Positions 23,968-43,858 of a stretch of 64,000 nt of DNA are shown piece by piece. The position numbers and the translations under genes are program-made. Location: assembly GCF_006345805.1 (NCBI RefSeq), contig NC_043005.1, forward strand, positions 4,588,001 to 4,652,000, written 5' to 3'. The first letter of the stretch is position 1. Each line of letters starts with the position of its first letter. This DNA comes from Octopus sinensis. Taxonomy: Eukaryota. The notes beneath the pieces were generated by a model. That model saw nothing but the letters and a program-made list of their open reading frames with translations. It was not told the origin of the DNA and ran no database searches.

Positions 23968-24945
23968 ATAAAATATGTCAGTGTCATATCTCATTTACAT
24001 AATCCAATGAGGTTGACTGCTGGGTCCCGTATATTAAGGGTTAATCCAGGATTAGATATGCAACTAGTAACATGTCCCTTCCCTTATTGCCTGATGAATA
24101 GAATCACTGCTTATTGTTGCCATTTCTTTTTATCCTCTCTATCTCTCCAGTGCCTGATCTATTTAAGTGCAAGGCGGTTGTCACCGAGAATGAGACCAAG
24201 CTCACCAGCACCTGCACAAAGGGGACCCAGAAAGAAGCCATCTCGTGTGCCATGGAAGACGTCATGAATCTAATCAGACTCTTGTCTATAACACTTAAAA
24301 ACAACGAAAACTAAAACACTTTGACTTCTAAAAAACTTGTTTGTTTTTCATTTTTCATTGTAATTGACAAGTTCAAGTTGGTGGTTCTTGGTTCTTACGG
24401 TATTAGGGGTTAGTCAGAAAGAAAGGGGACAGTGTGAGACAGTGGAAAATAGGATTACTATTAGAAAATCAACAATTTTGAACTCTAAAGAAGAACAGTT
24501 GTAGGATTGCTTACCTTTTATCTTTTACGTGTTTCAGTCATTAGACTGTGGCCATGCTGGGGCACTACCTTGAAGAATTTTAGTTGAATGAATTGACCCC
24601 AAAACTATTTTTTTAAACCTGGTACTTATTCTATCGGTCTCTTTTACCAAACTGCAAAGCTATGGAGGTGTAAACAAACCAACACCAGTTATCAAGACAC
24701 AAACACACACAGAGATAAATATATATATATATATAATATATATATATATATAATATATATATATATATATATATATATTATATATATATATATATATATA
24801 TATGTATATATATATATGTATATGATAAGGGTGGGACATATTATTAGTTACATATCTAATCCTGGATTAACCCTTAATATACAGGACCCAGCAGTCAACC
24901 TCATAGCATTATGGAAATGAGATATGACACACTGACATATTTTAT
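23968..24945. repeat. Inverted repeat of about 120 bp bracketing exon P1
   Basis: 23968-24087 versus reverse complement of 24825-24945, about 90% identical. Confidence 0.9.
24151..24314 (+). CDS. Terminal exon P1 (phase 1): xPDLFKCKAVVTENETKLTSTCTKGTQKEAISCAMEDVMNLIRLLSITLKNNEN*
   Basis: Strong acceptor CTCTCTATCTCTCCAG, open frame to TAA, clear paralogy with P2-P4 (CKA..E..T.L..TC......AI.CA). Confidence 0.85.
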
Positions 24946-25079
24946 AGGTGGAACAATTAAATCTGTATTAACCTAGTCTTACCTGTAAAAACCAGTTTTC
25001 TAGGAAAGTTACCTGTCACAGAGTACTCTTTTGTCCAGCAGTGATAGATTTTTCTCTCATCAAATTTATTCCTACAGAG

Positions 25080-25400
25080 CAGGGGTCACCAAATTATGGC
25101 CTGCAGGCCAGATCCAGCCCACGAGGTCAGTTCATCCGGCCTGCTGCTGCATTGTACCATTTGTGCAAGCACCTGCAATGAGAGGTCATTTGCCTCTGCT
25201 ATGGCATCAGTGTTTAGAACAACTTATGTCTGTGAGCAAATATTTTCAAAAATGAAGAAAGTGAAGTCAGCACATCAAACGAGGTCGACTGATTAACATT
25301 TGAAAGCAATTCTCTTGGTCAGATGCAGCAATTCCAAAACAAATATTGATAACATCTTAAAAGCTAAATGCCAGTTCCACAAACCTCACCATTTTTGCTG
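25080..25400 (+). mobile_element. hAT (Charlie/SPIN-like) element fragment
   Basis: TIR-like start CAGGGGTCACCAAA...GGCC, and SVFRTTYVCEQIFSKMKKVKS resembling the hAT dimerisation domain. Confidence 0.7.
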
Positions 25401-25868
25401 CTTAGTTTGTGAGATTCGGATATTTGTGCACTGGATGTGATGTAACTATCTCATTGCTAACATCGCCTTCTTTGATAACTTTCTGGTAAATGAATCTGTT
25501 TCTTAACGTAAAGTATACTAGCCATCTCAATATGGCTAACCGCTAAGGGTGGGTGTTACTGTAGCTTGTAGCCCCAGGAGATCATCGTCTCCAGCTGGCT
25601 TTAGGCACACTTTCTGTGCCTTATGGTATTTGCAAATCTGTTTGTTGTCTGTATTTTTTGTGTATTCACTGTCTTGTATTGAACAAAATGGTTATGTGGC
25701 CCATGATCATCATTCTTTCAGATATCTGTAACCATTCCACACTCACACACACACACATATGGTGTACCTTGGACTATATCATCAAATGTGTCCTTTTATG
25801 AAGACAACATAGTGTGATTTGAAGGATATTTGGTTGCTATATCTAGCAGGTCTAGAGACAATGTAGAG

Positions 25869-26417
25869 CAGAGGTTCCCAACCCTTTTCTATCTGTGGAC
25901 CCCTTTGATTCCTATTCTACTCTCCTGGACCCCTATAGTCATTCGATGTTTGAAAAAGTCCCATTGTATTTTTATAATTAAATATTAGGAATTGTATTTA
26001 AAAAAATTACTGAAACATTAAATGTTTTGTAGACTTATAACCATTTATTGCGAAGGCACGTGGCTTAGTGGTTAGGGCATTCGACTCACGATTGTAAGGT
26101 CATGAGTTCAATTCCCGGCAACATTTTATTTCATGTTGCTCTGGTCTTCTCAGCTGACAAAATTGTGTAGTACTTGTACTTCAAAGGGCCATCCTTGTCA
26201 GACTCTGTGAACTATGTTAGGGGTACATGTGTCTGTGGAGTGCTCAGCCACTTGCATGTTAATTTCATGAGCAAGCTGTTCCGTTGATCGGATCAGCTGG
26301 GACCCTCGTCGTCGTAACCGATGGAGTGCTCCTTAAACCATTTATTGCACATAAATTTAAACAACAAAATTTTAAGTGAATCCAAATGGTGAAATGGACC
26401 CTTATTGACAACCATTG
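25869..26417. mobile_element. hAT-type MITE carrying a nested SINE
   Basis: Ends CAGAGGTTCCCAAC / ATTGACAACCATTG; near-identical 8-bp flanks ATGTAGAG and ATGTAAGG. Confidence 0.55.
26052..26335 (+). mobile_element. tRNA-derived SINE, family D, full length with 13-bp TSD
   Basis: A box TGGCTTAGTGG, B box GAGTTCAATTCC; TSD AACCATTTATTGC at 26039-26051 and 26336-26348. Other copies near 15620-15930(-), 23085-23400(-), 51385-51660(+), 63755-64000(-). Confidence 0.85.
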
Positions 26418-41274: not shown

Positions 41275-41705
41275 ATCAAACCAAATCAAAATAGATGAAC
41301 ATCAATGGAATTTGTATCCTTGTGGTACCAGTGCCGGTGGCACATAAGAAAACCATCTGAACGTGACCGTAGCCAGTACCGCATCGACTGGCCTCCGTGC
41401 TGAGGGCACGTAACAAACACCATCCGAGCGTGGCCGTTCGCCAGCCTCGTCTGGCACCTGTGTCGGTGGCACATAAAAACACCATCCGAGCGTGGCCGTC
41501 TGCCAGCCTCGTCTGGCACCTGTGTCGGTGGCACATAAAATCACCCACTACACTCTTGGAGTGGTTGGCGTTAGGAAGGGCATCCAGCTGTAGAAACACT
41601 GCCAGATCTGACTGGCCTGGTGCAGCCTTCGAGCTTGCCAGACCCCAGTTGAACCGTCCAACCCATGCTAGCATGGAAAGCGGACGTTAAACGATGATGA
41701 TGACG
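41275..41705 (+). mobile_element. Family B retroposon inserted into a family A SINE
   Basis: Interrupts the SINE between its head (41044-41210) and tail (41720-41935); ends GGACGTTAAACGATGATGATG. Confidence 0.8.
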
Positions 41706-43070
41706 ATATATATATATATACATAAGTTTGTATATGATTGTGTGTCTGTGTTTGTCCCCTCAACATCGCTTGACAACTGATGCTGGTGTGTTTATGTCCC
41801 AGTAACTTAGCAGTTCAGCAAAAGAGACCGTTAGAATAAGTACTAGGCTTGCAAAGAATAAGTCCTGGTGTTGATTTGCTCAACTAAAGGCATGGCAGCA
41901 GTCAAATGACTGAAACAAATAAAAGAATAAAAGGATTATTTTTTTAAAAAGGCACCAATCTGGCAGAATTGCTGAGGTGTTGGACAAGTCACTTAGCAAT
42001 ATTTCTCCAGGCTCTTTACATTCTGAGGTCAAATTCCTCCCAGGACAACTTTGCCTTTCATCTTATCACAGTCAATAAAATAAGTATCAGTTGAGCACTG
42101 GGGTGCGTGTAATCAACTTAGCCCCTCCCCTTCAAATTGCTGGCTGGACTTGCACCAAAAAGTGAAACAACAATTTTTAGAATAGGTACTGATGATCTCT
42201 AAAAAGAATGAAATAGTGCCACACATGATTACCACAGACTGGAAATTTTAAGAAGTTCATTTTAAGTTAAAAAAAGAAAAAATTAAATACCTGTATCTTC
42301 TTGTATCTTCTTTCTTAAATTTCCTTAATTTCAAGTTCAATTTTCTAATCCGGTTCTGAAACATAATCTAATGATTATCTCCTGTGTAATAGCTGTTACT
42401 ACTAGAGGGACCATATGAATTATACCAGGCATGGGTAGCTTTTTTTTTCAAGAAGTGAGCAGCATGAGGCATGAATCACCATCAGGTGGGCCATACTACT
42501 AAGAAAATTCAAGGTAACTTTCATTGAAGGTGCACTTCAGAGAAACCTGTAGGTTGTAGATTGTCCTGACTGAGTTAGACAATCGGTTTTACAATACCTG
42601 CCAGGAGTGGAGATTCTTAACTTTGATTTTCTAAAAATCATTCCATAACTGCCAAGAATGCACAGATACAAACACCACCTGAAATATTAGTGATTCAATG
42701 TAGAAATATTAAAAAACCCAAAGTATATTTCAACTAAGGTGATACAGAGATGTATACAGGTGTACACACTCACACCCAAATTTAGTGTGCATGATTATAT
42801 GTATGTTTGTGCATATTCTTATATGCAGATATGTGTGTGTGTGTGTGTGAAAGAGAGGGGGAGAGAGGGAGAGGGTTGTATTTAAATGTGTGGGGGTTGG
42901 AGATTGTTTTGGATGCTGTGTGGCAGTTGAAAACTTGTTTTTCAAAGGTCATTATACCAATAATAAAACACACACACACACTTGTTCTATTTCATTTTTA
43001 TTATTATTAGTCAACTGATTAACCATTCAATCAATCATTTGATTAACTGTTTGGTCAATCAATCAATCAG

Positions 43071-43136
43071 CTAGGTCTTTTGTCACCATTTGCTGCCTCA
43101 TCAATGATGTGCTTTCTCTACTCCAGGTTGCTAATG
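43071..43136 (+). CDS. Candidate internal exon upstream of P4: 66 nt, phase 1 to 1 (xRSFVTICCLINDVLSLLQVAN), or a 10-nt version 43127-43136, phase 0 to 1 (VAN)
   Basis: Donor AATG|GTAACA is in the right phase for P4. Two possible acceptors: TCAATCAG at 43070 and CTTTCTCTACTCCAG at 43126. The long form resembles the exon-2 signal segment (F-x4-CL[IV]-x-[DE]). Confidence 0.5.
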
Positions 43137-43697
43137 GTAACAACAGGACTCGGATAGAACAAGCTGATTGATTGGTTGACCTAACAATTAATCAAAAAAA
43201 TCAATTAGTTAATTAGTTAAATGGTCAACTAGATGAATAATAACAATAAAATAAGTGAAATAGAGCCAGTGCATGTGTTTATTATTGGCATTAGGACCCT
43301 CCCAAGATACAACAAAATCTGTTTCAACAGATGATCTCACATCAAGAATTTTGGGAACCAAATAAAAAAATGAATCAAAATCTTTGTGAATAATAAACAT
43401 ACACTCCTTAAAGAGGTGCCATTCCACAAGAGATAGATAGAAAAATGGTTTGTATTTCATCATTGGATTTGGTGCTGCTTTTCTATCTCGAAATGGTGTA
43501 ACACATCATATTGAAAATCTCTTCAGATAATTATTTCAAAATTTAATCATTTTAAATCATGTGTGAATGAACGTATGGTGTTATGTAAGTTTTTACTTAA
43601 ATAAAGCCGTTTGTTTCCATTTTGACTTTTAAAATCCTGGTGTTGCAATGCTTATAGTTTTTCTCTAATTGCAAATATATATTTACATCTGTTTCAG

Positions 43698-43858
43698 TAA
43701 CTGATTTCAAGAAATGTAAGGCTACTGTGAAAGAAGCACAAACCGGTCTCAGTGCTACATGTGAGAAACATTATCAAAAGGAAGCAATTGAATGTGCGGC
43801 CAAAGAAGTTATTGATCTTCTGCAGGCATTAGTAAAGAAAGTTCAATCAAGTGCCTAA
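43698..43858 (+). CDS. Terminal exon P4 (phase 1): xTDFKKCKATVKEAQTGLSATCEKHYQKEAIECAAKEVIDLLQALVKKVQSSA*
   Basis: Acceptor TTTACATCTGTTTCAG (nearly identical to that of P3), open frame to TAA, AATAAA at 44251, same length as P3. Confidence 0.85.

Follow-up and report, generated by a model that had tools for sequence, protein, structure and literature searches.

Four tandemly duplicated exons at an Octopus sinensis locus are very probably alternative last exons of one gene for small, putatively secreted proteins

In this study, we analysed a 64,000-nucleotide (nt) stretch of the Octopus sinensis genome (NC_043005.1, positions 4,588,001 to 4,652,000 of the forward strand; hereafter the window, numbered from its first letter), which carries four paralogous terminal exons, named e1 to e4, of a gene for a small protein. 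A preliminary description, made from the letters alone, had reported four + strand exons in phase 1, each with an acceptor and its own stop, and the coordinates and translations agreed with it. Stop codons included, e1 lies at 24151-24314 (TAA at 24312-24314), e2 at 35083-35261 (TGA at 35259-35261), e3 at 39574-39734 (TAA at 39732-39734), and e4 at 43698-43858 (TAA at 43856-43858). Their translations are PDLFKCKAVVTENETKLTSTCTKGTQKEAISCAMEDVMNLIRLLSITLKNNEN (e1), VWPAQCKATATEKKTGLSATCERLNPKLAIECAVLKAANLVKRVAEKLDETTSDSRRF (e2), RSFLKCKATVTEKQTGLAGTCQKHYQKEAIQCAMAKTVKLLRELIKKIDAGA (e3), and TDFKKCKATVKEAQTGLSATCEKHYQKEAIECAAKEVIDLLQALVKKVQSSA (e4). Each exon is preceded by an AG acceptor, with a pyrimidine content at -22 to -3 of 0.9, 0.9, 0.65, and 0.7 for e1 to e4, respectively, and the only open frame of each, running 52-58 codons to the stop, requires one upstream base (phase 1).

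The four translations were aligned with each other. The results showed 14 invariant columns (C, K, A, E, T, L, T, C, K, A, I, C, A, and L), including three cysteines in C-x14-C-x10-C spacing with no gaps between them, a pattern that the preliminary description had read correctly. In pairwise BLASTP within the window, e1 to e4 matched one another at E values of 1e-7 to 1e-20 and matched nothing else, and a six-frame scan of the window with the terminal-exon profile gave exactly four matches (E 1e-25 to 2e-27; next best, E 0.28). The likeness among the four is far beyond chance. Self-comparison of the window DNA showed that the similarity between units is restricted to the exon and about 40 nt upstream of it; two short collinear blocks were also found downstream of e3 and e4. 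The C-terminal tails are amphipathic, with hydrophobic moments of 0.54-0.60 in the C-terminal 18-residue windows, and the net charge of the variable modules is 0 for e1, +4 for e2, +7 for e3, and +2 for e4.

The constant exons lie upstream of this array, on the same strand. The coding part of exon 1a is a 13-nt mini-exon at 11570-11582 (ATG AAG TTA TTC T, MKLF), with a GTAAGT donor at 11583, and it is conserved in Argonauta. Exon 1b (13388-13587; acceptor AG at 13386-13387 and phase-0 donor GTAAGT at 13588) codes for the remaining signal peptide (..LIFLLTSCLVVEKTHG) and the N-terminal helical region LPDLAGIIAG...FFKGSEGD. Exon 2 (16075-16150, 76 nt; phase-1 donor GTAAGT at 16151) codes for the 25-residue middle piece IPVPETSFVLHFVADRCHIIGKRFL plus one base, and holds the invariant G-K-R-F motif and a fourth cysteine. 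The odd number of cysteines in the terminal exons had been taken to imply a partner from an upstream exon or disulfide dimers, and a TGC codon in exon 2, in ...FVADRCHIIGKRFL, completes the count. The small secreted protein that had been proposed also gained support, because exons 1a and 1b supply the features of a signal peptide, namely an MK start, a 13-residue hydrophobic core, T or V at -3, and G at -1. These features are kept in three octopods, in which the predicted mature N-terminus, LPDLAGIIAG, is identical, and from them we infer that the product is secreted. An alternative in-frame start (MVLYDFSVFAV...; 13357-13387, + strand) reads into exon 1b and matches the O. vulgaris model CAI9728594.1; residue 5 is D in the window and Y in that model, the sole difference there.

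The sequence evidence makes it very probable that e1 to e4 are alternative last exons of one + strand gene, which lies between about 11.5 and about 44 kb of the window. When 11570-11582, 13388-13587, and 16075-16150 were spliced to e1, e3, and e4, the products were letter-for-letter the isoforms X1 (XP_029641168.1), X3 (XP_029641170.1), and X2 (XP_029641169.1) of LOC115215941, respectively, so that RefSeq models make use of every acceptor but that of e2. The codons formed at the junction of exon 2 with e1 to e4 are TTG, TTT, TTG, and TTA, and all four acceptors are phase-compatible with the donor at 16151. In O. bimaculoides, LOC106883259 uses e1 in isoform X1 and e3 in isoform X2.

We then compared the window with the loci of two other octopods. 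The order of exon 1, exon 2, and four terminal exons is preserved in the Argonauta hians locus (L005), where each acceptor is again in phase 1 and each frame stays open; the annotated Argonauta model uses the third terminal exon only. The gene is about 12 kb long there (L005 10001-21800) versus about 32 kb in the window, and intronic repeats make the difference. The O. bimaculoides locus (L006, CM046610.1) has the same layout as the other two. An N run (assembly gap) through L006 position 33838 leaves the e4 orthologue without its acceptor and its first ~22 codons, which probably explains why only two isoforms are modelled in that species. Against Argonauta, the collinear DNA similarity of the window did not extend beyond the exons and some 20-45 nt at each acceptor, whereas identity to O. 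bimaculoides is 85-94% throughout, introns included, which is too close to inform. Exon 2 is 100% identical to that of O. bimaculoides and 77% identical to that of Argonauta. Core identity to the Argonauta orthologue is 78% for e1 and 73% for e2, a clear one-to-one relationship for both.

These loci bear on whether the array is one gene or, as the preliminary description had assumed, a lineage-specific expansion of several genes. In the latter case, e1 to e4 would belong to four tandem paralogous genes, each with signal-peptide and middle exons that have diverged and gone undetected. Short signal-peptide exons do diverge fast and may escape tblastn, and the 4-11 kb spacing of the terminal exons suffices for small genes. 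However, the three-cysteine module requires the cysteine of exon 2, and this well-conserved exon is single in every octopod locus, just as the window and the loci of Argonauta and O. bimaculoides each have one copy of exon 1. The RefSeq isoforms connect the single exon 2 to e1, e3, and e4 exactly, and in Argonauta the stop of the third terminal exon, which is e3-like, is only about 500 bp from the acceptor of the fourth, which leaves no room for separate genes. An all-versus-all BLASTP of the open reading frame (ORF) pieces of the window for paralogous upstream exons returned interspersed repeats only. Because exons 1 and 2 are single-copy and the RefSeq models and orthologous loci agree with this, we favour one gene with alternative last exons, and consider four separate genes highly improbable.

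Selection on the exons was estimated by the Nei-Gojobori method (NG86), with a Fisher test of the proportion of nonsynonymous differences (pN) against that of synonymous differences (pS). Between the window and Argonauta, the ratio of nonsynonymous to synonymous rates (dN/dS) was 0.20 for e1, 0.15 for e2, and 0.37 for e3; for e4, dS is saturated and only pN (0.25) and pS (0.96) are given. pN was lower than pS for each terminal exon (P = 5e-5, 2e-7, 0.004, and 6e-15 for e1 to e4, respectively). The four exons concatenated gave a dN/dS of 0.157 (dS about 1.8, near saturation), and constant exons 1 and 2 gave 0.144. Between the window and O. bimaculoides, the concatenated terminal exons gave 0.235 (P = 8e-5). 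These results show that every copy of the terminal exon is under purifying selection, with dN/dS well below 1, in line with what the preliminary description had argued.

The same data bear on a reading of e1 to e4 as open frames that arose by chance or as copies of an ORF from a transposon. The window is rich in interspersed repeats and microsatellites, which would favour such an origin. Against it, the copies number exactly four, all collinear on one strand, and no further copy lies in the rest of the window or in the sequence flanking the related loci; the similarity is limited to the exon and about 40 nt of acceptor; the copies show orthologous conservation with pN far below pS; and no transposase match was found in Pfam. 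This reading is effectively refuted already, and its probability is negligible.

Among the four exons, e2 is in no protein model of the searched collections, and its predicted 155-amino-acid (aa) product was likewise absent from these collections (15 billion sequences). Only e1, e3, and e4 might be used, with e2 as an unused or decaying duplicate. The missing protein model would fit such a duplicate, as would the first poly(A)-type hexamer of e2, which is the furthest of the four (925 nt downstream), and its dN/dS between the window and O. bimaculoides, which is the highest of the four (0.40) and not significantly below 1 (P = 0.11). However, in O. sinensis, O. bimaculoides, and Argonauta alike, e2 keeps an open frame, its three cysteines, and its acceptor (..tactctcttcctag), and between the window and Argonauta its pN is 0.24 versus a pS of 0.69, with the lowest dN/dS of the four. 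Furthermore, a more distant species carries an e2-like exon (WPA.CKA...), again with a phase-1 acceptor, in 1.1-kb genomic Logan contigs (ERR12370320 and others), which showed no DNA-level similarity to the octopod loci. We infer that e2 is in use, and regard its being a disused copy as unlikely.

In the proposed mechanism, the phase-1 donor at 16151 would be joined to one of the four tandemly duplicated last exons, each bringing its own acceptor, its own stop, and, judging from hexamers, its own downstream cleavage and poly(A) site. The first candidate poly(A) signals on the + strand are, for e1, ATTAAA at 24956-24961 (642 nt past the stop; consensus match only); for e2, ATTAAA at 36186-36191 (925 nt; consensus match only); for e3, AATAAA at 40222-40227 (488 nt; consensus), with a second at 40244; and for e4, AATAAA at 44076-44081 (218 nt; consensus). 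The outcome would be four secreted proteins of about 130 residues after removal of the signal peptide, with residues 1-97 in common and the last 52-58 differing. The choice of last exon would presumably be coupled to polyadenylation and be cell-type specific.

An inverted repeat with arms at 36265-36465 and 36492-36692 (201 nt each, 95% complementary, with a 26-nt spacer) lies about 1 kb downstream of the e2 stop, amid the candidate poly(A) hexamers of e2. It could be an insertion resembling a miniature inverted-repeat transposable element (MITE) or a hairpin within a long e2 3' untranslated region. The interval 35446-37145 contained no megablast block of at least 200 nt against O. bimaculoides.

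To find relatives of the terminal exons, we searched 1.84 billion representative proteins exhaustively with a four-exon HMMER profile. The search returned six proteins, three of which were relevant: an O. bimaculoides protein of 150 aa, a read-assembly fragment of 59 aa, and a chiton protein of 420 aa. The other three were low-complexity or repeat artefacts, judged from their sequences (FN3-like repeats from bacteria and a short repeat protein). When the four exon peptides were used in a word-indexed protein search, no match was obtained. The O. bimaculoides protein is isoform X1 of uncharacterized protein LOC106883259 and consists of the signal peptide and helical N-terminus, the middle piece, and the e1 peptide. 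A search with full-length constructs returned isoform X2 of both Octopus species and one Argonauta hians protein. The same gene is represented elsewhere by O. vulgaris CAI9728593/4 and Argonauta hians GAB1603129.1, and all models are named 'uncharacterized' or 'hypothetical'.

The chiton protein, LOC135463155 (XP_064596543.1) of Liolophura sinensis, contains three near-identical copies of the whole unit. Each copy is about 35% identical to the octopus protein and homologous to it over the whole unit. The motifs conserved between chiton and octopus are G-I, L-L, L-D, S-F-F-x-G-x-x-G-D-x-P, L-H, C, and G-K-R-F in the N-terminal half, and the shared strings include LH....C, GKRFL, and CKA..E...C....A..CA. 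The chiton introns lie at the octopus positions and in the octopus phases, phase 0 after ...GD and phase 1 after ...GKRFL. Because both positions and phases match, the ancestral three-exon unit is judged to date at least to the chiton-cephalopod ancestor. On this comparison of sequences, the family is not cephalopod-specific. A search with the chiton protein returned only itself, so that the known range comprises octopods, one chiton, and one Logan species.

The two lineages differ in how the unit is multiplied. In the chiton, the three units stand in series in one frame as a polyprotein, with no alternative last exons, whereas in octopods the last exon alone was multiplied. The chiton exon for the C-terminal module continues via KPKR into the N-terminal half of the next unit (fused exons), and the units are separated by KPKR and preceded by EKR. 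At the chiton locus (L007, CM072721.1, 15871-21550), the three units are 96-100% identical, suggesting recent duplication or homogenisation. A thrombospondin type 1 (TSP1) repeat (PF19030, TSP1_ADAMTS) flagged on the chiton protein was rejected. The 28.5 bits behind the flag were the sum of one partial match, to profile positions 7-30 of 55, repeated identically in each of the three units, no octopod protein matched, and each chiton unit has four cysteines and none has the W-x-x-W motif that is typical of TSP1.

The octopod family had been described as unrecognised, and our searches agreed. No octopod isoform scored above the Pfam cut-off (best E 0.07, 13.8 bits versus 23.4), a PDB sequence profile search gave a best E value of 2.1, and Foldseek against the PDB gave no match at E <= 0.001. 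None of the outcomes that the preliminary description had named as refuting it was seen: neither a known domain nor a transposon matched, RefSeq protein models use three of these acceptors, and dN/dS lies well below 1. We modelled mature isoform X3 with AlphaFold2 from an 8-row alignment. The model reached medium confidence (predicted local distance difference test, pLDDT, 73; predicted template modelling score, pTM, 0.67) and contains helices within 4-41, strands at 48-53, 60-65, 81-89, and 95-100, and a helix at 103-128. The part encoded by the terminal exon is the most confident (83-86), and the sole segment below 50 is the loop 73-76, K-R-F-L. In a model of the chiton unit, which was of lower confidence, the elements followed one another as in the octopus model and the loop was again disordered.

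According to the model, the variable exon encodes a beta-hairpin and the C-terminal helix, that is, half of one alpha/beta domain. The variable module is predicted to contribute three of the four cysteines, two of the four sheet strands, and the C-terminal amphipathic helix, and exon 2 would contribute two strands and one cysteine. The 'helical domain' of the preliminary description was thus right in part: the last ~25 residues are predicted to be helical and amphipathic, whereas the cysteine-rich first half is a predicted beta-hairpin belonging to the alpha/beta domain. Since the variable module would be half of a domain, the choice of last exon would swap one surface and the net charge and would add no independent domain. 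The alpha-beta-beta-beta-alpha folds found by Foldseek (dsRBD and YfiA/HPF) likewise pack helices on a small antiparallel sheet. The best of them, a dsRBD-type match, was not significant (E 0.05; template modelling scores 0.41/0.50; root-mean-square deviation 7.4 A), and dsRBD and YfiA/HPF proteins are intracellular, bind RNA or ribosomes, and have no disulfides, unlike the octopus product.

Another subject of interest was the G-K-R-F motif, which is invariant from chiton to octopus and reads G-R-K-R-F in Argonauta. Its G-K-R lies at the junction of exon 2 with the last exon, in the only disordered loop of both models. The motif may be a proprotein-convertase site, G-(R)-K-R, which would make the product a two-chain, disulfide-linked extracellular signal or effector; sequence and model make this an appreciable possibility that we put forward tentatively. 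The suggestion is based on the invariance of the motif, its place in a flexible loop at the constant/variable junction, the R-K-R of Argonauta, and the KR spacers of the chiton. The glycine before KR would serve amidation, and cleavage would leave the constant N-chain disulfide-bonded to a variable C-chain.

With the same gene anatomy, the product may instead be an uncleaved, single-chain secreted binding or defence protein in which G-K-R-F is a structural or recognition motif. We hold this possible, with some doubt. One predicted sheet holds strands on both sides of the loop, and octopod proteins have no family-wide conserved dibasic site besides G-K-R. In addition, the N- and C-terminal helices are amphipathic, as in a membrane-active protein for example, and the net charge of the isoforms ranges from 0 to +7. 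On the other hand, the loop is the single low-confidence segment in both models, yet its four residues are invariant from chiton to octopods. Argonauta strengthens G-K-R to R-K-R, and the chiton precursor is clearly organised for processing at KR sites between its units.

Taking the convertase-cleaved product together with the chiton relative, the gene could belong to a family of secreted molluscan ligands that is ancient and undescribed and whose members are cut by convertases into two disulfide-linked chains, although as a whole we judge this unlikely. If true, chitons would multiply the product by a polyprotein and octopods would diversify it via four last exons, with e2 unannotated. One promoter would then give rise to four hormones, pheromones, or effectors, each specific to a cell type, and no structure related to their fold has been solved.

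Several points weigh against one gene with four alternative last exons and a cleaved, disulfide-bonded secreted product. The support for the isoforms comes from RefSeq models rather than RNA reads, and none of these contains e2. The poly(A) signals of e1 to e4 are candidate consensus hexamers only, 218-925 nt downstream of the stops, and the signal peptide was assessed by eye. The fold model is of medium confidence from eight aligned rows. Convertase cleavage is hypothetical, and G-K-R-F could alternatively be a structural or binding motif. Finally, e3 and e4 share 56-69% core identity with the two distal Argonauta exons in all combinations, so that one-to-one orthology is ambiguous; judging from these sequences, the e3/e4 duplication may predate the Octopus-Argonauta split or may have occurred twice.

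Other features of the window were noted as well. Upstream of the gene, the block AACAGTTGTAGAATTTCACATCAAAGATAAAA at 11280-11311 (+ strand; 32 nt by BLAST, corresponding to L006 9714-9745 and L005 9123-9154) is 100% identical in O. bimaculoides and Argonauta hians, and its flanks are unalignable with Argonauta. In the three-species alignment, 33 columns (11280-11312) are invariant. The block lies about 260 nt 5' of the exon 1a ATG and includes a CAGTTG E-box-like core, and it may be a promoter-proximal element of this gene. No counterpart of the Yip1-domain gene that lies upstream in Argonauta was detected in the window.

Short interspersed repeats of at least two families occur on both strands of the gene introns and flanks, with copies that are 70-90% identical. 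Copies lie at 11959-12324, 17996-18274, 41041-41275, 47313-47790, 57022-57531, and elsewhere; further copies lie at 879-1337, 19619-20029, 30898-31434, 41279-41687, and 60288-60559. Some of the interspersed repeats also match within the Argonauta locus. In the e1-e2 intron, just upstream of e2, a 128-aa open piece on the - strand (34203-34586; ..IMPPFIFPH..RRPYVWQQGSTPSH..IWPPNSSDCNSF..) resembles the C-terminal part of a mariner/Tc1-type transposase, and another - strand open piece (28920-29363), containing ..LYVGETQRQLANLFQKH.., is reminiscent of the nuclease motif GIY-YIG (Penelope-like). Neither piece had a Pfam match at E <= 0.01, nor did the intronic ORF pieces at 29705-30091 (+), 61732-62298 (+), and 29119-29655 (-). 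Two further features are unrelated to the gene: a (GGT/GAT)n minisatellite at 51855-52859 (99-bp period, about 0.9 kb, open in several frames) and a (TATG)n microsatellite at 54793-55722 (930 bp).

The gene and its three isoforms were already known in RefSeq, unnamed and without a domain. Searches of the searchable literature with gene identifiers, accessions, and peptide strings returned nothing on the gene, and the cephalopod prohormone literature held nothing relevant. What is new is the conserved exon e2, the Argonauta array, the chiton polyprotein with the same intron phases, the predicted fold, which lacks a solved relative, and the candidate processing site. The gains are a predicted, conserved fourth isoform absent from the models in the searched collections, a chiton relative that fixes the ancestral three-exon unit, and a processing site that can be tested. 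Nothing is overturned by the finding: orphan secreted proteins are common, as are alternative last exons. It offers a clean, conserved cephalopod case of protein diversification through tandem last-exon duplication, common to two octopod families (Octopus and Argonauta), in which the swapped piece would be half of a folded, putatively disulfide-bonded domain from a family without name, domain, or structure.

Two known systems resemble this arrangement. Vertebrate CALCA (calcitonin/CGRP) is an alternative-last-exon peptide gene whose 5' exons, including the signal peptide, are common and whose 3' exons have their own stop and poly(A) site. The octopus gene is similar in its common signal-peptide exons, its alternative 3' exons, and its different, presumably secreted products from one gene. 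It differs in that its four alternative exons are mutually paralogous and encode what are predicted to be interchangeable domain halves, whereas those of CALCA encode unrelated peptides. In Drosophila, lola, fruitless, and mod(mdg4) have duplicated alternative 3' exons and encode nuclear BTB zinc-finger or FLYWCH proteins, some of them trans-spliced. These genes share with the octopus gene a constant N-terminal part joined to one of several paralogous terminal modules, whereas the octopus product is small, contains cysteines, and is presumably secreted.

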